In this document: piece after piece, positions 4,077-59,691 of the stretch
Layout: each line of letters starts with the position of its first letter
How positions within the stretch are numbered: position 1 is the stretch's first letter
Notes under the pieces: model-generated
Databases searched by the model: none
Told to the model about the DNA's origin: nothing
What the model saw: the letters and a program-made list of their open reading frames with translations, nothing else
Position numbers and translations under genes: made by a program
Source of the DNA: Chlorokybus atmophyticus
Taxonomy: Eukaryota; Plantae; Mesostigma and Chlorokybus algae
Length of the DNA: 64,000 nt
Assembly (NCBI GenBank): GCA_009103225.1
Contig: RHPI01000810.1
Coordinates: 620,001-684,000 of the forward strand
Reading direction: 5' to 3'

Positions 4077-6359
4077 ATGGTGAGCAATCCTGCGGGAGCC
4101 ACGGCGGCCGGCGCCGTGGCTCCGACGGTGGCGAAGCTGCGTGCCGCCTTCGACCAGGGCATCACAAGACCGTTGGAATGGCGCGAGCACCAGCTCAAGC
4201 AGCTCATCAAGATGGTCAAGGAGCAGAAAACCGCCTTTGTGGAAGCTCTTCAGGCTGACCTTGGCCGTGGAGAGGTACATCTCACACACTCTGCATGCCG
4301 CATGCAAGTCTTTGATCAGTGACAGTCCATAAATTATTACGCATGTACGTTGCAGTGGACTAGTCTACTGCGATTGCCAACGCAGTAAGCCACAACAGCA
4401 AGACAAACAGCCACGCTTGCGTCGCACTGCCTGTTGTGCGGGCGCCTTGTTAGACTGCCTTGTGCGACGTCGTGTAACGTTGGTGGCGCGCGCTCTCATG
4501 CTGCACAGCAATGAGCACAGTGTGATAAGCTGAGCATGGCTTTACATTGTCGCAGATGGAAGCGAGTGTGGTTGAGGTGGACGGTGTCTGCGCGACCATG
4601 ACGGACTTACTCAAAAACGTCAGAAAGTATGTCAGTTTGGGTTACATGTGACGACAGCTGTCATGACTGTTTTTGTTTGATTTCTATTGCTTTGTAAAAA
4701 TGACAAGTGTTGTTTGAACTCTTGACAGGTGGGCTGCACCTCAGAAAGTCAAGACGCCAATGTCTTTCTATCCAGGGACTGCAGAAGTTGTGCCTGAGCC
4801 ATTGGGCGCAGTGCTCATTATTGCTCCCTGGAACTTCCCTCTCAGTAAGTTTATGTCTGCTGCAGTCTGCGACTTGCACTCTGGCAGTTTCTGTGCGTTG
4901 CAAAAAATGACCTTCAACTCAGTGTCGGACTGATATTCAGTCCCATTCGTGTTTGTGTTACGCAGTTTTGCTTCTTGAGCCTCTTGCTGCAGCCATTGCA
5001 GCTGGCAATGCTGTAGTGGGCAAGCCGTCTGAAGTCTCATCGCACACTTCTGCGGCACTTGCCAAGTATGTTCCGCAATACATTGACATGCGTGCCATCT
5101 CCATCATTGAGGGTGGAAAGGACGTTGTGCAGCAGCTGCTCGAACAACGGTATGTATATGTATGTGCATTGTATAGCGTTTTGTGGACACATAACAAACA
5201 CAATGCTCACATGGTTGGAGTTGTTCGTAGGTGGGACCACATCTTCTACACTGGTGGCAGCAGTGTTGGGCGCATTGTCATGGCTGCCGCTGCCAAGCAC
5301 TTGACGCCAGTAACGCTGGAGTTGGGTGGCAAGTCGCCGTGTTATGTGGACAAAGACGTGGACGTGAAGGTCAGCACACCTCACTGCTTTGTAACTGGTT
5401 GGTTGTGTATCTGCTTGTGCATGCCTCTCTTTTGAGGACGCCTTTGCTGTGAACCTCATGTGTGGACAATGGCTTCTTGTTATCTTTTGTGAACAGGTTG
5501 TTGCAAAGAGAATGCTTTCGGGCAAGTTCACAAATGCAGGACAGATTTGCGTTGCACCGGACTACTGCTTGGCACATGAGAAGATTGCGCAGCCGTTGCT
5601 GGAAGCCTGCAAAGATACGATCAAAGAGTTCTATGGTGAAGACCCCAAAGCGTCGAAGGACTTTGCGCGCATCATCAGCGACGGTCATTTCAAGCGTGTG
5701 TCTGGCATTCTCGATGAGGTTAAAGACCAAGTCTTTGTGGGCGGAGCTACTGATCCGCAGCAGCGGTTCATTGCTCCAACACTGTTGAAGGATGTGCCTG
5801 AATCTGCTGGCTATTGGAAGGAGGAGATATTCGGCCCTCTGCTTGCTGTGGCGCCCGTTCCTGATGAAGACGCTGCTATTGAGTTCATTCGCAAGGGAGA
5901 GAAGCCTCTTGCTCTGTATGTGTTCTCGAACAGCTCGCAAGTGCAGCAGAAGATTGTGAGTAACACGTCGTCTGGCGGTGTTTGCATCAATGACACCGTC
6001 CTTCATGTAAGTTGTGTTTCTTTGCTGTTGCCACTTGGCAGCCCTTACATCGCTGCTTCATTAGTGCACTTGAAGAGTGCATTGAATTGTAGTAATCATA
6101 CCTTGATGCATGGCAGCTTGGCATTCCTGACTTGCCCTTTGGTGGAGTTGGTGAAAGTGGCATGGGCGCTTACCATGGCAAGCGCTCATTTGATACGTTT
6201 TCACATATCAAAGGCGTCGCCAAGAAGCCATTGGCAAACGATCCCGCGCTGCGCTATCCGCCGTTCACTCCCAAGAAGATTGCACTCTTGTCTTTGCTGA
6301 TTGGTGGCGGGTCCCTTCGCGACTGGATCAGTTGGCTGTTTGGGTGGGGCAAGAAGTGA
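4077..6359 (+). CDS. ALDH3: Aldehyde dehydrogenase family 3 (fatty aldehyde dehydrogenase-like); exons approx. 4077-4274, 4556-4626, 4729-4844, 4966-5149, 5231-5369, 5497-6006, 6117-6359
   Basis: Spliced translation gives [29 protein letters not shown] (catalytic Glu), [11 protein letters not shown] (catalytic Cys), EEIFGP and [16 protein letters not shown]; all introns GT-AG. Confidence 0.95.
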
Positions 6360-12743: not shown

Positions 12744-15480
12744 ATGCAAAATGATGGTCCTGTCTTGGAGTCAGCACAGCAGCACGGGTTGTCGGACAAG
12801 TTGCAGAAGAGTTCCAATGGCGCGAGGAATGGCACACATAGGAGTGTTGTTGATGAAATTCTGAACGCTGATGACGAGTATGGTGATTTTGGGGACGATC
12901 TTTATGCGGACTATGATGAAGACAATGACCATACACAAGACGCACGCAGAACATTACAGGCATACAAGCATGACACCAGAGACAGCCCACGAGCGCATAT
13001 GCAACATGCGGCGTAAGTGGCCGCAGCCTCTGTAGTGAACTGTGCGTTCTTGTGCTCTCTCCATGTGATTGTTGAATTTTGCATGCTATAGTTTTCTTCA
13101 GGGAAGAAACTTTGTTACCGGAATTGTATTGCGTGTTAGCTTAGCCATGGACATGGCAGGCTTAGGGCTGGGTTAGTGTTGACCATGTGTGCTAGAGCTG
13201 CTTCTTTGTCGCCCCGCCTGGCCAATATGGGCTTTATGTTAAATGTTGTCTGTATGCCTGAAGACGCAAAGAAGAGAGGAGGCAGGGTGACAGACACCGA
13301 AAAGACCATACCGAAGCTGCTCGTGCAGTGCGCAAGGTTTGTGTCCTGTGGCTTGTTGCAAGCATATGGCTTGCTCTGCACCGTTGTCAAGTCGTCCGTT
13401 GTCACAGGATTCAGTTGCTGCACACGCCATCAACACCGAGCGGCCAAGCACACGGCATGCAGGTGAGCATTTGCAAATTTGGACCTGAGCATTTGCTAGC
13501 GTGGGTGGTTGTTCTTACCATCTGGCAGCACCCGCAGGAGCACTGGAGGAGAACCAGCAACGGTCGAGGCATATTGACAAAGACGTTCACAGCAGGCTAG
13601 GCCAGGCACAGGGACGCCGATATCTACGCCGCTACTTCATCATAAAGAGCTTTAATCGCGAGAACATCACAAGGTCCATTGAGAATGGCATATGGGCCAC
13701 GCAGAAGGTCAATGAGGCAAAGCTAAATGAAGCCTTCAATGTAAGTTTGTGGTCATGTGCAGCACTGCTTTTCATTGGGTATCTCAGGTGTTGCATGCTG
13801 CTGGGATTGTGCATACGTTTTGACATGCTTATCGCTTGCCTACAGTCAAGCGATCAAGTCTTGCTGGTATTCTCAGTCAATGGAAGTGGACATTTTCAAG
13901 GGTTTGCCCGGATGACATCACCAATTGGACGCAAGGCACATTCTGTCTGGTCGGGGGGAGACCATGGCGGTGCAAAGCCATGGGGTGCATCATTTGGCGT
14001 AGAATGGATACGCCTGTATGACTTGCCCTTTGAAAGAACAAATCATCTGCACAACCCATGGAATGAGGACAAGCCAGTGAAAATCAGCAGGGACGGGCAG
14101 GTATGAATGCGTCCCATGGTTGTTTGCAAAGTACGGTAGTCATATTCTCCCATGGCATTGAGCTGCGTGTCTACGCAGGAGCTGCCCATGGAGTTAGGTG
14201 ATGAGCTTTGTCGGTTGTTTCACGAGGGCGCAGACGGCATGCTGCATAAACGGTACGGACAAAAGAGTTAAACTGGGGGGATGGTCCCATCCCACAGTGG
14301 CAAGCGTACTCAGTTTTGCGCTGTCGGGTGTACAGGCAAGGCGGGGGTGATTTCTTACCACCTGCTGGAGTGAAGCGCCATCGACCTGCACGCCCACCCT
14401 TGGACATGCCATGGCCAGGGCCACAACCTTACCTGCCTGTCAACAGCATGATGCATCCACCAGGGCCAATGGGAGCGTTTCCGTACATGCCTCCCCCTGG
14501 AATGGGCTACGGCGGCTTTCATTTTTCAGGAAATGGTCCTGCTGGTGCGTTGGGTAAGAAGACCTTGTGCTCGCTACTGGCTATGCAACGATGCTGTGAG
14601 CAGATCTCTTATGTCTTTTCCATGCCTTGCAGATACCAGGCCAGGAAGCAAGGAACACCGTAGGCCGCCCAGGCCTGAAGCAGAACCGCGTCACAGGTGG
14701 GTGAATTCAGAACTAATGAAGTGACATGGTACTGCTCTCCGACACCTTCATGTTGGGTCTCATTAGGTCTAGAAGTCGATCTCCTGAGCGCAGTGCCAGG
14801 GCGCGCTCTCGAGACAGCGAGCGCCAGCGTGCGGACACGCTTGAGCAACCCAAGACGCCAGCTTTGGTTGCAACAGATATTGCTGATATGGTGAGCCAGT
14901 TTACGAGCCAGTTGGACTTGTGGTGCTGTATTGCAGTTGTGAATTACGTACACATATGGCCACTTATGCATGACGTGAACACAGCGTCCTGTATGAACTC
15001 CGCTGTATGTGCTTTTGCGTAGACATATGAAGAGTATCTGGAGCATTTTACAAACAAACAGCAAAGTTGTGAGCCCAGCAATGGCGCTCTTAGCATGGCA
15101 CCAGGCATGAGCATGCCCGGTGCTTATGCTCCTGGCGGAAATAGCTACAACATGGCAGCACTTTATGGTGGCATGTCAATGGCCCTGGCTGCTGGTGTAA
15201 CAGAAGAGGAGTAAGTGTGTGTTGTTGCAAACAGCTGTACAGTGCATGCTGAATGCTGTTCTGCCATTACCTTGTCGTACAGAGTTCATGTTCCGCTTGT
15301 GTCACCAGGTATTTGGAGTACATGAAGCACATGCAGCGGCAAGCCGCACATAGAACTAGTAGGTCAGCGCATGGTAGTGACGTATCTCCCAGTCAGCACC
15401 TGTCCTCCCCAACAGCTGCAGACAGCACAGAGCGCGGCAGTCACATCCATCGCAAAAGCGCGCGAGCAACTGCCAAGTAA
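12744..15480 (+). CDS. YTH-domain m6A reader, YTHDC/ECT12-like, multi-exon; N-terminal exon structure uncertain
   Basis: RYFIIKSFNRENI...GIWATQ...VFSVNGSGHFQG...PWGASFGVEW...PVKISRDGQELP; C-terminal DMTYEEYL-type motif; no CCCH fingers seen, arguing against CPSF30-L. Confidence 0.88.
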
Positions 15481-24763: not shown

Positions 24764-27700
24764 GTGAGTTACAAAATAAACAACGACACTGAGTGTGGTT
24801 GTCATGGTGCCCAAGTATCATGGACCGTGGCTAAGCATATTCGGGGGGGGACTGTGTTGAAACAATTCACAAAGCGTGAGACGGGGACAGTGCGGTTGTC
24901 AGCGGTATTGATTAACCCACGCATCAGTCGCGGAATCTTAGCTACCTTTCAAGGGCGAGTAGTACCTTTACTGTAGACCTTCACAGACACGGCACAGGGT
25001 ATTACTAGCTCGTTCTTGGTTGACACCGGGGCAACGCATAACTTCGTCGAAGATAAATGGGTTATGCGCAATAAGATAGCGTGTAAACCCTCAGCCTTAC
25101 CAGCTGCTGGAACTGGAAGTGCGTTACCAGTAAAAGGTGAAATCAAGTTGAAAGTTAAGATTTGTAGTTATCAAGCCAATTTAACTTTCATCGTAGTACC
25201 CATTAACATAGCTGGTGTTGATGTGGTATTTGGCCAAGAATGGCAAAATCAAGTGTCTATTACATCAGATACTGCTGCACGGTTGTGCACAGTAAGAAAG
25301 GGGCGTAAGCGCATCACTTTGTCCGTGCAGGGGTCGCATAACTTGGAATACAAGCAAACAGACCCTGCGTTACTTACGGCGCTTCAAGTGAAGCGTGCGT
25401 TACATAAAAACACACCTGCTTTTTTGATGCACTTAACGTCGAGTGATGAAGTAGTGCCTGACAATACAGACATTGTGGCGGACATCGCTGAGAAATTTCA
25501 GGATGTGTTCACAAATGAGTTGCCGGGCTTGCCCCCTGATCGAGGTGTCGGACACACAGTACCTTTAATTCCTGCTAGTGAGCCTCCATTTCGGCCTATA
25601 TATAGGTTGAGCCCTCGTGAGAGGGGGGAAATGAAAACACAAATAAAAGAGTTATTAAAAAAAGGATTGATTGAACCAAGTTCTTCACCCTTTTGCGCTC
25701 CCATATTGTGTGTTACGAAAAAGAATGGGAAGTTGCGCATGTGTGTGGATTACCGTGCTCTAAACATGATCACGGTACAGATTAGATACCCGTTGCCAAT
25801 GATTGATGATGTGTTTGACAAGTTGTCAGAGAACGCGTACTTTAGTACGCTAGACTTGACAAGCGGCTATCATCAAATGTCTATAAGACAGCATTCAGGA
25901 CACCTACGGGTCATTATCAATACAAGTGTTACCTTTTGGACGACTAATGACTCATGCACCCGCTGTGTTTCAGAAGGAAATGAATAAATTTTTTGGTGAT
26001 ATGCTTGGTCAACATGTCGTGATATACTTGGATGACATCATTGTCTTCAGTAAAATAAAGGGAGAACATAGGCAACACTTGGAAGCGGTGTTTGCAAGAT
26101 TGCGCAAGCATCGTTTGTTGGCAAATCTCACCAAGTGTGATTGATGTAAAACGAAGTTGCGCTTTCTTGGTCACATTTTGAGTGGTACGAGTATCAAACC
26201 TGACCCTCGCAAAGTGCAAATTGTGAAAGAGTTTCCCCAACCTCAGGATATCCATCAACTACTGGTCGTTTCTAGGGTTGGCAAACTACTGTCGCAAGTT
26301 CATGATGGGGTGCTCGACAGTTGTCATGCCTTTCACCAAACTGTTGCGTAAAGATGCCCCGTTCACTTCGACAACAGCACAAGAAGCTGCTATGCAAAAG
26401 GTCAAGTTGGCTTTAACATCGGCGCCGGTGTTAGCACTGCCAAATTGGGACAAACACTTCACAGTGGTCAGTGACGCATCAACACTTGGGTGTGGTGCGG
26501 TACTTGCAAGTTGGTAGACCTTGTGCTTATGAAAGTAGGAAGTTCATTCCTGCAGAGGTGAACTACACGACAGAGCAAGAACTATTGGGTATAGTTCATG
26601 CTCTTGAGACGTGCAGATGTTACTTATAGGGTGTTTAGTTCACTGTTGTGACTGATCACAACCCGTTGGTGTATTTCTCAACACATCAAAACTTGTTAAG
26701 ACGGCAAGCACGCTGGACTGAGTTTTTGTCCAGGTTCACCTGGTTATGGGTGTTTCGGCCGGGCAGAACCAATGTGGCTGACCCTTTGAGTCGCTGCCCG
26801 TCATTACTGGCGGTAATGCGCGCGGTATTACTCGCGACACGCAGCACATTGTCTCCCGATGATGAGTTTGTGCAAACTTTTGTACGGGAATACACTTTAG
26901 ACCCGTGGTTTTCTAATGCAGACAACTTACAAAAAGTTTGACAAATGTGACAATTTGTATTACATGAGCAACAGTTTGGCGATCCCTGATCATCAGCTGA
27001 ACTGCGTGTAAAATGCATAGCGGATGTACACGATCCACCTTACGCTGGGCACTTTGGTAGTCGCAAGACCATTAAGGCGGCGCAACAGTTGTATTGGTGG
27101 CCATCGTTGCCTGCTGATGTGAAGCGCTATGTGGACACGTGTGACAAATGTCAACGTGACAAACCTTTACGTCAAAAGCCCGCTGGGCTACTGCGGCCGT
27201 TACCAGTTCCTGACAGTAAGTGGGAAAGTGTGAGTAAGGACCTTATCACTGAGCTCCCTGAGACATCGTTGGGTCATATGCGGTTGCAGTGTTTGTGAAT
27301 CGTTTGATCAAAATGGTTCACATCGTTCCTTGCCGTACGGAGATAGGCTCCCGTGATCTAGCAATGGTTTTTGTCGCGTCAGTGTTCAAGTTGCATGGCT
27401 TGCCTCGCAACATTGTCTCTAACCGTGACCCGAGGTTTGTGGCTCAGTTTTAGAAGTCGCTGTGCAACTTTCTGCATATACAGCAGCACATGAGTACCGC
27501 TTATCATCCGCAGACGGATGGTCAGACTGAACGCGCCAATTACTTGATTGAAGAAACCATTCGGCATTATGTGAGTCCGAGTCAGTCCGACTGGGATGTT
27601 TATCTTCCAATGGCTGAGTTCGCGATTAACAATGCGTGGCAAGAGAGCGTGCAGGAAACTCCGTTTTTTAAAAAATTACGGAGTGCTTCTACAAAGTCCT

Positions 27701-28290: not shown

Positions 28291-28452
28291 GGACGGGAAA
28301 AGGGTGATGGCAGACCTTTTTACCGCTTCGGCCCTGGTTCTTTTCTCACTCAGGTTTTCAGTGCTCGCGGTGGGGCCTTGCTAACCCTTCAATGAGGACA
28401 TTGAAACCTAAGGGGGGGGGGGGGGGGGGGGGGGNNNNNNNGGGGGGGGGGA

Positions 28453-31200: not shown

Positions 31201-31983
31201 CTTGGTGCTGCCGGTAGCTTGACGGCCTGCTTTGTGTCGCAGCTGTCTGCCGGCGCCGCAGGGGCGGCGGCGGCCGCGACGGCGCTTGTGGGGTGGTTGG
31301 TCGAGGTGGAGAGCGGGGTTAATCTGCGAGTAGCTGGCAGGAGTCTTCTGGGACGGGGTGGAGACATTTTCGCCGAACGGCTTTCATTCGCCAAGGCGTC
31401 AGGTTTGTGCCGGGCGTGTCGCCGCCTTCTGCTGCTTGTGTGCTAGCTTCTTGCTCAGCTCCGTCGCCAGGCGCTTCCTGTTTGCTCTACATTGGCCTAA
31501 CGGTAGTGTCGGTACTGGGTCGTGAGGCTAGCGCTTGACTCGGTGTTGGCACCGCGATGCAGCATAGCTAAGCACTCTTCAACCCTAAAGCTGTCTTAAG
31601 GCAGCAACTGCCGCTTTTCTCCAGAGGCCAGGGTGTTCTCCGTTTAAACAACGCAATCGCTACATTCAACTGTCGTTTGCACGTACACCTGTAGGCCCTG
31701 GAGGTCTTGTTGCTGCCCCTGTCCCCGTGTGCGATTGCAACGTCCTTCAGAGTTTAGCTTCATGTCATTCACCTATCAAGCTGATATAGTGACAGCTCAA
31801 TTGTAACAGCTTGCGGCAGCTAGGGATATGTGTTGCTTATTCGCTCCTGCTGGCCCAGGTCCAGCTTACGCTGCCTTGCCTATACTTTATAAACCCTCAG
31901 CAGCTGCGTCTGTGGGTATGTTGTACTAGTAGCTGACTTTTAGTTTAATCACTTGCAGGCTGGAACAAGAGACCGAGTCGGTC

Positions 31984-33545
31984 ATGGCCCGGACTGCCAT
32001 GAAACTGGATGTACAGTCGCCAAATGATGTTGCCGTTGCTGCAGCTTCGCCATCCATATCTCCGGAGGACGGCGTATATGATGACAGTTCCGATGGGGCT
32101 GTCAGCACGCGTGGCGGCCGCTCGCAGCGCAAGCAGCAGAACAACCACAAATACATTCGTTACACACCCGAGCAAGTAAGAGGCATGGTCTTGAAGCTTA
32201 ACCACCCGTTCATTTGCCAAACCATGTTGCCAAGTAAACGCACTAGTGTAGTAGGGCTCCCATGTTGTCAAGCTATCCTTGCTTACGCGAGTGTCGCAGG
32301 TGGAAGCTTTGGAACGCGTTTACTTGGAGAGTCCCAAGCCTAGCTCTTCGCGCCGGCAGCAGCTGATCGCCGACTGTCCCATATTGCGCAATATTGAGCC
32401 CAAACAGATCAAAGTCTGGTTCCAGAATCGGCGGTAAGCGATCACGCATAGCAAGTCAGGCATGTGGCGCACATTTTTTCCTTGCTGACTCTGGTCTGGC
32501 AGGTGTCGTGAGAAGCAACGTGCAGAGAGTGTGAAACTGCGGTCTCAGAACAACAAGTTGTTGTCAATCAACAAGCAGTTGCTGGAAGACAATGCAAGAC
32601 TGCAGCGCCAGTATGCAGTCCTCACTGCAGAAATGGAACAGCTCAAGCAAGCAGCACTGTTAGCGGGTCAGGTGAGTTCCACACAGGACGTTGTTGTCGT
32701 TGGACAGCGTGCCCACCATCTCACCGCATGCCCTGACAACTCCTCCGCACAGGTCATGGTGCCAGTGAAGCAGCAAGGCGAGGATGCACCTTGGCTGTCA
32801 CCGTACTACACTGGACTGGCATCAAGCATACTCAGCAGTTACAGGTAATGAGACAAGCCTCCAGGCACAGCTTGCCTTGAATTTGTCAGCATGGATACCA
32901 TTGTATACTGAAGCATGATCACCCAACAGGCACCACACAGGAATTTCTCTGATCACCAAGGAAGAAGAGGCTCTGTACAACAACAATCCGGCATTGGCAT
33001 TGTGGAGTGCAAAGCCTCCCACCATTTTTCTTGAGTGGCGTGGGCAGCCTGTCTTTACGTATGCCAACCGTAATGGCCTCGCGTTCTATGACACCACTTT
33101 TGAAGAGCTCTCAAATCTAAGCTTCGGCAAAGTGGTTGATGAGAAAGGCCGCGCTGAGAGGGAGAATCTGCTGGCAATGATTGCGCACAAGGTGCGTATA
33201 CGCCTGCCAACGCTGCTGCTGGTTGCTTGAGAGTATTGATGTCTTACTGCTGAAGCCTGTGGTGATTAGGGTGCGGCTGGCTTGGCCTCTGGCGTGCGTT
33301 ATACTGCCAAAGGCGCTGCGGTCAAGTTCGAGCATGCCCTCATGTGGACGGTGAGTGCCAAGGACGGACTTTGCCTCCACCATGGCAGCAGCTTGTGGGC
33401 AAATTGTTTCCGTGCTCTGTGGGTCAGCACAAATACATGTAACATGTGGCAAATGCAGGTTTTTGAGGAGAAAACAGAGCAAGTGCTTGGTCTGGCCAGC
33501 ATGGCTTTCAACTGGTCAAGAGACCCTCTTCCGGAAGAGCTTTGA
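31984..33545 (+). CDS. Class III HD-Zip-like transcription factor lacking START/SAD (HD-LZ-MEKHLA, 338 aa); exons 31984-32175, 32300-32433, 32503-32671, 32753-32844, 32930-33191, 33270-33350, 33459-33545
   Basis: KYIRYTPEQVEALERVYLESPKPSSSRRQQLI..IEPKQIKVWFQNRRCREKQR (C3HDZ homeodomain with its insertion); heptad zipper; then LASSILSSYRHHTG, QPVFTYAN and FNWS (MEKHLA). All six introns GT-AG and in phase; 1017-nt CDS. Confidence 0.93.
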
Positions 33546-34973
33546 CACATATTACCCAGCATTTGACGCAGTTGGTGGTGTGAAAGGCAACTGTATATGT
33601 TCCGATGCTGACAGAAACCTCGAACTCGACAGTGAAGTACTGCGCGGGCAGTCGCGAGGATCGTCCGCCTACCAGCAACAGTTTGGTTGGTGCGGCTTTT
33701 TACCCTAAAACTGCAAGCAGTGTGTAGGCTCCGCAGATTGTGCAAATATCCACCCGCGCATGACAGTGTTGAGCCGTTGCGCATTGCAGGTAGTGGCATA
33801 TAGTGTACGTAGCTGGTATATGTGGCTTGTGTTGCGAACACGCGACATGTTATGTGTTCATAAAACGCGGAAGCAGGTTATGGTGTCATCATTAGTGGCA
33901 TATAAGTTTGTGACGACCTTGTTGTCGGTTGCCATTGTGTATGTACTTGACGCAAGTGCAACAAATACTCGCCAAAGCTGTGGGCCTCAGGGTGCTTAAG
34001 AATGCCCCAAAGCCACTCCCCCTTTTCAATGGTGTATCGTGACCCTGCTTGCGCCTTTGCATGTGCAAGTGTATACCTAAGGCACAACTAGCTGCATGGA
34101 CATAGTGCATAAACCCTACCTTGCATACATCGTATGCCTCGAGTTGGTTGCTGCATTGGTGACATGTGCTGCCTTCTGCCTGCCTCACCCACCATAGCAT
34201 CGAACAGCACATCAGAGTGAGGTAGTGGCTTCCGATGTAATAGCATTGGTTTTTGGTAACTTACATTGCAAATAGTTGTCCTACCTTGCTTTCTGCACAT
34301 GTTCCACCTTTCAGCACAGTTTGACTAGATGGTTGACTATGACGTATATCCTACGCATAACACAACTCACACGTCTGCGACAACAACACCTATTTACACA
34401 ATCACCGGCTTAACCAATCACGCAAGCTAGTATACTTGTACTTGTGTGCTTGAGTGCGGTTGTATGCTATGCATTGGAACTACTGGACATCTCATACCAC
34501 GTTGCTCACCACTCTAATGGCCCAAACCCCGTGCAACACATCTGCAAGCACATGCGTCAGCATAACCTATCTGCCCAAAATGTGTCTTTGGCGCCACTCG
34601 TGCCCCTCATTCACGTTGCCCCGTATGGGTTAACTGGTCCATTATGCCTACTATGGCATGTGTACATGGTCGCATAACGTTTGTCATACTTAGTATATAT
34701 AACACAGTCAATAGCACAGCACAACCACACATGCAACCACCCGTTATGCATAAACGACTATACCATGCCCTTTCACATACACCCATTCGTATTGCCCTCG
34801 ATCCATTGCTGCCAATGTGACGTCCGTTGTTAATAATGTCATCATCAATAGTGCCCACCTCGACACGGCTCCCCGCTCCATCATCGCCCACGCCTTGATC
34901 GCTGCAGTGCACATGCCGCGCTTTGGTAGAACATTGTGATGAAGCCTCTCAGTTGGCGTAAATGCAGCCTTTA

Positions 34974-58330: not shown

Positions 58331-59691
58331 CATGTTGTAACACTTGGCACTGGCTTATTTGCTCAATAGCACTCCCTGACTTGTGTACGCACACAAGGAC
58401 TTTACCTAAGCAAGGACGTACATCCCCCAGGAAGTAGCCCAGCAACACCGCACCAAGGAAGGAGCCCGAGATGATCACAACAGCTCACCTCCAGCTCCAG
58501 ATCCTTACGGACCCNNNNNNNNNNNNNNNNNNNNNNNNNNNNNNNNNNNNNNNNNNNNNNNNNNNNNNNNNNNNNNNNNNNNNNNNNNNNNNNNNNNNNN
58601 NNNNNNNNNNNNNNNNNNNNNNNNNNNNNNNNNNNNNNNNNNNNNNNNNNNNNNNNNNNNNNNNNNNNNNNNNNNNNNNNNNNNNNNNNNNNNNNNNNNN
58701 NNNNNNNNNNNNNNNNNNNNNNNNNNNNNNNNNNNNNNNNNNNNNNNNNNNNNNNNNNNNNNNNNNNNNNNNNNNNNNNNNNNNNNNNNNNNNNNNNNNN
58801 NNNNNNNNNNNNNNNNNNNNNNNNNNNNNNNNNNNNNNNNNNNNNNNNNNNNNNNNNNNNNNNNNNNNNNNNNNNNNNNNNNNNNNNNNNNNNNNNNNNN
58901 NNNNNNNNNNNNNNNNNNNNNNNNNNNNNNNNNNNNNNNNNNNNNNNNNNNNNNNNNNNNNNNNNNNNNNNNNNNNNNNNNNNNNNNNNNNNNNNNNNNN
59001 NNNNNNNNNNNNNNNNNNNNNNNNNNNNNNNNNNNNNNNNNNNNNNNNNNNNNNNNNNNNNNNNNNNNNNNNNNNNNNNNNNNNNNNNNNNNNNNNNNNN
59101 NNNNNNNNNNNNNNNNNNNNNNNNNNNNNNNNNNNNNNNNNNNNNNNNNNNNNNNNNNNNNNNNNNNNNNNNNNNNNNNNNNNNNNNNNNNNNNNNNNNN
59201 NNNNNNNNNNNNNNNNNNNNNNNNNNNNNNNNNNNNNNNNNNNNNNNNNNNNNNNNNNNNNNNNNNNNNNNNNNNNNNNNNNNNNNNNNNNNNNNNNNNN
59301 NNNNNNNNNNNNNNNNNNNNNNNNNNNNNNNNNNNNNNNNNNNNNNNNNNNNNNNNNNNNNNNNNNNNNNNNNNNNNNNNNNCCCCACTACCCCCACAAG
59401 GGTGGTAGGGGAAGAGCCCCTCTAACAGCCCCAAGCTAGGCACCCCACACATTTATTGGTACACTACTAGCGCCACTCCAAGTTGCCCAACACTAGGCTG
59501 CCATTTAGCTTATGTACCCTTTGCTGCTCTCCGACCTGGCACACACATTAATTAATGGGCCACACGAGCCCTGACAGTGTGCGCTGACCTGTAAGCACAT
59601 GCTGACATATTCCCTACATTGGGAACAACCCACCTCCGAGTTTCACCCATCACATCACTTACACCTCGGGAATGTCAAACATAGCCATGAG

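Follow-up and report, generated by a model that had tools for sequence, protein, structure and literature searches.

Within the window (the whole 64,000-nt stretch of Chlorokybus atmophyticus DNA analysed here) we found a class III HD-Zip (C3HDZ) gene whose 338-aa product carries the homeodomain, the leucine zipper and the C-terminal MEKHLA domain and has neither START nor SAD. In land plants, C3HDZ factors hold a central place among the regulators of development. The encoded protein is identical to EukProt EP00898_P004699, that is, JGI Chlat1 protein 522 of gene Chrsp103S00993, and the gene model is already public. Its sequence characters place the short gene firmly in the C3HDZ lineage, and we think it probable that Chrsp103S00993, expressed and intact, is an old C3HDZ paralogue from which the START-SAD block was lost.

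The gene structure is summarized in Table 1. All seven exons have GT..AG borders and add up to 1017 nt, which encode the 338 residues and the stop codon. Two spliced transcript contigs, one of 1691 nt from a study of 2021 and one of 1673 nt from an independent study of 2013, both 100% identical to the window, remove exactly the six coding introns, and neither of them contains START exons. Contig X1 begins at 31238 and contig X2 at 31249, the transcribed exon that holds coding exon 1 starts at 31956, and the low-depth pieces of a third run display the same splice joints. Since the 5'UTR of the mRNA contains a stop codon in frame and the start codon is the first ATG, the ORF and the protein are complete. 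Intron 3 is in frame and stop-free, and its retention would add 27 linker residues with the frame intact; it is spliced out in both full contigs, and N is absent from the intron, the gene and its surroundings. Thus, the reading of the first-pass annotation, which had described seven in-phase exons for 338 aa and a gapless 81-bp intron between zipper and MEKHLA in which nothing is hidden, is borne out on each of these points, and START exons in the transcripts, which it named as a refutation, are absent. In run X3, one short contig covering 32560-32638 differed at 3 of 79 bases and another from the same run was identical; the mismatching one possibly comes from a second allele or from a related strain in the sample.

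Table 1. Features of the short C3HDZ gene Chrsp103S00993 (positions in the window)
Feature	Position	Strand	Content
5'UTR exon, first, non-coding	31238-31399	+	Transcript contigs X1 and X2
5'UTR intron, 556 nt	31400-31955	+	GT..AG; joint 31399-31956 in three runs
Coding exon 1, aa 1-64	31984-32175	+	Disordered N-terminus and homeodomain start; GT..AG border
Coding exon 2	32300-32433	+	Homeodomain core; Pfam Homeodomain E 1.2e-10 with the exon alone
Coding exon 3	32503-32671	+	Homeodomain end and leucine zipper; weak HALZ match
Intron 3, 81 nt, phase 0	32672-32752	+	At the START-SAD place of canonical genes
Coding exon 4, aa 166-196	32753-32844	+	12-residue linker, then N-terminal helix of the MEKHLA region
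Coding exon 5	32930-33191	+	MEKHLA core; Pfam MEKHLA E 3.3e-12 with the exon alone
Coding exon 6	33270-33350	+	MEKHLA beta strands, GVRYTAKG motif
Coding exon 7	33459-33545	+	MEKHLA end and stop codon
3'UTR, ~484 nt	33546-34029	+	Transcript contigs end at 34029 and 34022

Other features were noted in the window. Some 6 kb upstream of Chrsp103S00993, an ORF on the + strand (25016-25987) matched reverse transcriptase and a retroviral-type aspartyl protease and is probably the remnant of an LTR retrotransposon, and an ORF on the - strand (1492-2250) carried a DDE_1 superfamily endonuclease domain of the transposase type (E 1e-23). Exons of a YTH-domain gene (m6A reader type) were found at 13501-14106 (+) and those of an aldehyde dehydrogenase gene at 5449-6300 (+). 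N runs, which represent assembly gaps, lie at 58515-59382, 8-116, 1313-1449 and 28435-28441, and the largest of them accounts for the fall in GC to 0.31 between 58 and 60 kb.

With the whole protein, Pfam detected a Homeodomain at residues 56-114 (E 1e-15) and MEKHLA (PF08670) at residues 187-330, which cover positions 3-142 of the 143 of the profile (E 9.7e-29); no START was found in the 338 residues, in agreement with the exon-wise scans, and bZIP gave no significant match. The AlphaFold2 model (mean pLDDT 81) has a disordered stretch (residues 1-55), the three homeodomain helices, the third of which runs unbroken into the zipper (98-162, pLDDT ~95), a linker of low confidence (163-177) and a confidently folded alpha/beta domain (178-335) that in Foldseek matched PAS/LOV domains with TM scores of 0.6-0.72 normalised to the target. 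A PDB sequence search gave no useful match. The zipper carries Leu at six d positions in a row and Asn at three of the a positions, and it aligns with C3HDZ without gaps and in the same register. Taking the end of the model helix (162) and the start of similarity to the MEKHLA region of the full-length paralogue (178), the linker between zipper and MEKHLA is 15 residues long, so that the direct fusion to a full MEKHLA over about that distance, as first proposed, holds by Pfam, by the model and by similarity to the paralogue.

The absence of START, also claimed in the first-pass annotation, could be extended to the surrounding DNA: a tblastn search with residues 160-680 of the paralogue disclosed no START/SAD-like coding sequence in the 64-kb window. 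The similarity of intron 3 to START/SAD was no better than that of shuffled sequences, and the candidate remnant considered in intron 3 or at the start of exon 4 was rejected because it did not rise above shuffled sequence. Exon 4 itself matched paralogue residues 682-704 with a score that none of 300 shuffles reached. The miRNA site stated to be missing is indeed so, no miR165/166-type site being present in the window at up to 3 mismatches. Such a site is a land-plant feature and is not expected in Chlorokybus.

Several characters tie the short gene to class III. Both Chlorokybus proteins, like those of Chara, Sphagnum and angiosperms, have a Thr-to-Trp spacing of 43 in the homeodomain, against 39 in one class IV protein. 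The addition of four residues to the homeodomain, which sets class III apart from classes I, II and IV, is a derived trait of class III (PMC3773374). Moreover, we compared the gene with a REV-like gene of the cotton Gossypium trilobum (L083), the 17 exons of which were mapped onto its protein, and found that three of the six Chlorokybus coding introns share both alignment column and phase with it. These are an intron within the second Arg codon of WFQNRR (NR/R, phase 2, end of exon 2), one at the start of the MEKHLA region (SY/R, phase 2, end of exon 4) and one inside MEKHLA (K/G, phase 0, end of exon 5). By a rough estimate, the chance of three such exact coincidences is on the order of 1e-5. 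As one of these introns is in the homeodomain and two are in MEKHLA, a shared ancestry of the gene is indicated for both modules. On the same basis, we rejected an origin as a retrocopy, because introns are common to the cotton C3HDZ, and an independent fusion with a bacterial-type MEKHLA, because the MEKHLA introns are. In the cotton gene, exons 3-14, which encode the START-SAD block, are bounded by phase-2 introns after codons 122 and 667 (122.67 and 667.67), and removal or insertion of the block would therefore keep the frame.

A START-containing paralogue, for which the first-pass annotation had proposed a search, is present in the same genome. Chrsp86S08029 encodes 843 aa and is a canonical C3HDZ with Homeodomain, START (E 3.9e-9) and MEKHLA in Pfam; its presence means that a C3HDZ without START is not the rule in this lineage. 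An exhaustive representative search with exon 5 (MEKHLA) returned only the protein itself and Chrsp86S08029, plus two repeat proteins that we discarded as false hits. A canonical Chlorokybus C3HDZ (CaC3HDZ) has been used experimentally (PMC11564692), and according to the genome paper Chlorokybus has HD-ZIP classes I-III and lacks class IV, Mesostigma being devoid of classes I-III (PMC7027972). The identity between the short gene and Chrsp86S08029 is 59% in HD-Zip and 44% in MEKHLA; with land plants and Chara, the short gene is 63-71% (HD-Zip) and 26-36% (MEKHLA) identical, and the values of Chrsp86S08029 with land plants are ~50% and 25-36%. A divergence as deep as that between the paralogues implies that the duplication is old, and it could predate the split from the other streptophytes. 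The homeodomain of the START-bearing Chrsp86S08029 is the more diverged of the two and has the class IV state at five sites. The conservative homeodomain thus sits in the START-less gene, which is the opposite of what would be expected if the short copy were drifting.

The MEKHLA motifs of the short gene had been described at the outset as resembling those of bacterial stand-alone proteins more than those of angiosperms. In the alignment the likeness is real, a stand-alone MEKHLA of Methylococcaceae having REERERIL and GVRISKTG where the short gene has RAERENLL and GVRYTAKG and land plants have GRKxLxSE and GxCxSxMG. It is not, however, specific to the START-less gene, for Chrsp86S08029 has RADREQLL and GIRYSAKG. 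Since the motifs are common to the START-bearing paralogue, they are a feature of Chlorokybus and no mark of the absence of START. At seven MEKHLA sites the land plants alone differ, and the closest MEKHLA to that of the short gene is by far that of Chrsp86S08029 (44%), the bacterial protein being at 29%. The motifs reflect either a slow evolution of MEKHLA in Chlorokybus or a fast one on the land-plant stem.

No other genuine HD-MEKHLA protein without START was found among proteins of 186-591 aa. Ensete proteins with homeodomain and MEKHLA and no START were rejected as fragmentary models that read through the NR/R intron and retain SAD sequence. Exon 5 alone gave no match in a word-indexed search of proteins of 48-152 aa, and a protein search with the paralogue yielded only four land-plant proteins. 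The scan of genome contigs found one true bacterial MEKHLA (L002); a further match (L001) was false and lay inside a 580-aa membrane enzyme. Metagenome contigs produced land-plant C3HDZ transcripts or genomic pieces only, the full transcripts encoding the canonical ~840 aa, with no START-less form and no close relative among them. The searchable literature mentions neither the gene identifiers nor a START-less algal C3HDZ, and in that literature the architecture appears to be unreported; an earlier description in Romani et al. 2018 or Mukherjee & Burglin 2006 is possible.

To get insight into the branching order, maximum likelihood trees were built separately for HD-Zip, rooted on one class IV protein, and for MEKHLA, rooted on one bacterial protein, on a thin sampling that had no Klebsormidium, Zygnematophyceae, Coleochaete or full-length Chara C3HDZ. 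The HD-Zip tree joined the two Chlorokybus genes as sisters with support 77/79. Forcing the paralogue outside cost 1.2 lnL (p-AU 0.35). With the short gene constrained to branch off outside every START-bearing gene, the cost was 2.9 lnL (p-AU 0.08), and this topology was the worst of the three. In MEKHLA, where the land-plant domains form a long, well-supported branch, the three rooted topologies were within 0.4 lnL of each other and that with the short gene outside had a p-AU of 0.32. Separate phylogenies, which the first-pass annotation had proposed as a check, therefore gave a sister pair for HD-Zip and no preference for MEKHLA. Informative quartet site patterns with the short gene as the outlier (BC/AO) were absent from HD-Zip and MEKHLA alike (0 sites in each). 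The states shared with land plants were 11 for the short gene versus 1 for the paralogue in HD-Zip, and 10 versus 5 in MEKHLA.

We believe that loss of the START-SAD block is the probable explanation for these results. START-SAD is common to classes III and IV, but the class IV homeodomain is unexpanded; hence, a gene with the class III insertion and MEKHLA should derive from an ancestor already equipped with START-SAD, and the absence of this block from the short gene would be a loss. In the accepted order of events, a class IV-like HD-Zip-START protein gained MEKHLA. Against a loss, no START/SAD remnant was found in intron 3 or its flanks. Moreover, since Chlorokybus is reported to be without class IV (PMC7027972), the textbook argument that START preceded MEKHLA is weakened and there is some room for the reverse order, in which an HD-Zip protein acquired MEKHLA and the four-residue insertion, START-SAD entered one copy later and the START-less copy survived only in Chlorokybus. 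The deep divergence of the paralogues is consistent with such a course, and neither the MEKHLA topology (p-AU 0.32) nor that of HD-Zip (p-AU 0.08) is formally rejected. In addition, with classes I-III and no class IV in Chlorokybus and none of classes I-III in Mesostigma (PMC7027972), only one or two losses would be required, class III may predate class IV, and the symmetric phase-2 flanks of the cotton START-SAD block suit the insertion of exons as well as their deletion. We nevertheless regard this order as unlikely, because neither module has a single site in its favour, the short gene shares more land-plant states than its START-bearing paralogue does, and the topology is the worst of the three for HD-Zip. 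Furthermore, as the class IV homeodomain is unexpanded, START-SAD would have to be acquired twice or moved between classes, or else the insertion reverted, and the searches brought up no genuine START-less HD-MEKHLA protein of 186-591 aa from another organism. Of the two possibilities raised in the first-pass annotation, the ancestral intermediate has thus found no support, given the existence of a START-bearing paralogue, the characters derived within C3HDZ, the lack of informative sites and the p-AU of 0.08 in HD-Zip. The derived minimal sensor-transcription factor fits better, even though the trees do not settle the branching order.

A copy truncated by an internal deletion on its way to a pseudogene, with no role of its own, might also lack START. 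The form is known in one species only, and deletion of START abolishes the developmental function of PHB in Arabidopsis (PMC10226595), both of which would suit decay. The 338-codon ORF is nevertheless intact, all its splice sites are canonical and used, runs of two studies show its transcription, and its MEKHLA is complete and folds confidently in the AlphaFold2 model. In addition, HD-Zip has kept 63-71% identity to land plants against ~50% for the full-length paralogue, and such conservation despite the deep divergence indicates long purifying selection, which makes a decaying copy very improbable. The chance that START exons were missed altogether, because a region had collapsed in the assembly or the gene model was wrong, is close to nil: apart from the N runs elsewhere in the window nothing is in favour of an artefact, and against it, no N occurs in or near the gene, the 2013 and 2021 transcript assemblies agree on a 1.69-kb mRNA without START, and the ORF has stop codons on both sides, one in frame upstream and one at its end.

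With the START-SAD loss as the preferred reading, a mode of action can be proposed. C3HDZ factors bind a palindromic site as dimers (Sessa et al. 1998, as cited in PMC10226595), and the short protein, which has exactly the recognition helix of land-plant C3HDZ and the more conservative HD-Zip of the two Chlorokybus copies, would be predicted to bind a site of this type as a zipper dimer. This could be a homodimer or a heterodimer with Chrsp86S08029, the a-Asn and d-Leu register being the same in both. Its activity would be gated only by the MEKHLA sensor beside the zipper, with no lipid input through START. Magnani and Barton reportedly found in 2011 that MEKHLA restrains the dimerisation of REV, and by analogy it could be the only switch in the short protein. 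When START is deleted from PHB, 15% of the protein forms dimers versus 80%, DNA is still bound and activation is weaker (PMC10226595). The short protein would probably tune the same targets, with the lower intrinsic dimer stability and potency of that deletion form, and since START-deleted PHB dimerises poorly, still binds DNA and activates weakly, a role as a weak activator, or as a heterodimer partner that tunes the canonical paralogue, is plausible.

The individual contributions of START, SAD and MEKHLA are an active question (PMC10226595, PMC11564692, PMC13590234), and Chrsp103S00993 represents a natural, long-conserved and expressed HD-Zip plus MEKHLA version in that lineage of streptophytes which is furthest from land plants. 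Together with the canonical copy of the same genome it makes a ready-made comparison pair, which could show how the MEKHLA sensor acts alone, whether dimerisation outside angiosperms needs START, and whether short C3HDZ proteins modulate the full-length ones as the ZPR microProteins do in land plants. The gene is relevant, too, to the question of which domain was added when, and here the evidence favours loss. Should it be, as we doubt, a living relic of C3HDZ assembly in which MEKHLA was gained before START-SAD was inserted, the accepted order would be reversed and class III, not class IV, would be the older START-linked design.

Compared with canonical C3HDZ proteins (REV/PHB/PHV/CNA/ATHB8, Chrsp86S08029 and the CaC3HDZ of PMC11564692), the short protein has the same four-residue homeodomain insertion, an identical recognition helix (KVWFQNRRCREKQR), the same zipper register, a C-terminal MEKHLA and three intron positions in common. 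The canonical proteins, however, have ~840 aa, and the short one, with 338, lacks the ~500 residues of START and SAD, the latter being a cryptic second START (PMC13590234), and with them the region that in land plants bears the miR165/166 site. The engineered PHB-Delta (PMC10226595) is another C3HDZ lacking START, with HD-Zip and MEKHLA retained, and it is the only experimental hint at how such a protein behaves; it is artificial and apparently had START alone removed, whereas the gene of Chlorokybus arose naturally, is old and conserved and is without SAD too. The stand-alone MEKHLA of Methylococcaceae (a 172-aa ORF, L002:1291-1809) shares the Pfam domain and the motifs PVFTYANR, RxERExLL and GVRxxxxG, but it is only 29% identical to the short protein, and bacterial proteins of this kind have no DNA-binding part and no introns.

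In layout, the short protein recalls the stramenopile aureochromes and other bZIP-PAS/LOV factors, in which a basic region and a zipper are likewise followed by a C-terminal sensor of PAS fold. The bZIP-LOV aureochromes were the nearest clusters by protein-language-model features, with scores (0.82-0.84) below the level of kinship, and the LOV domain of aureochrome 1a was among the Foldseek matches. The LOV flavin-cysteine motif (NCRFL) was not found in the short protein sequence. Aureochromes are bZIP proteins unrelated by descent to the Chlorokybus homeodomain protein, and the analogy concerns layout and PAS fold only. The LITTLE ZIPPER (ZPR) microProteins are short relatives of C3HDZ, and a pairing through the zipper with full-length C3HDZ, as in their case, is conceivable for the short protein as well; ZPRs, however, have neither homeodomain nor MEKHLA and form dimers that do not bind DNA, whereas the short Chlorokybus protein keeps both domains.
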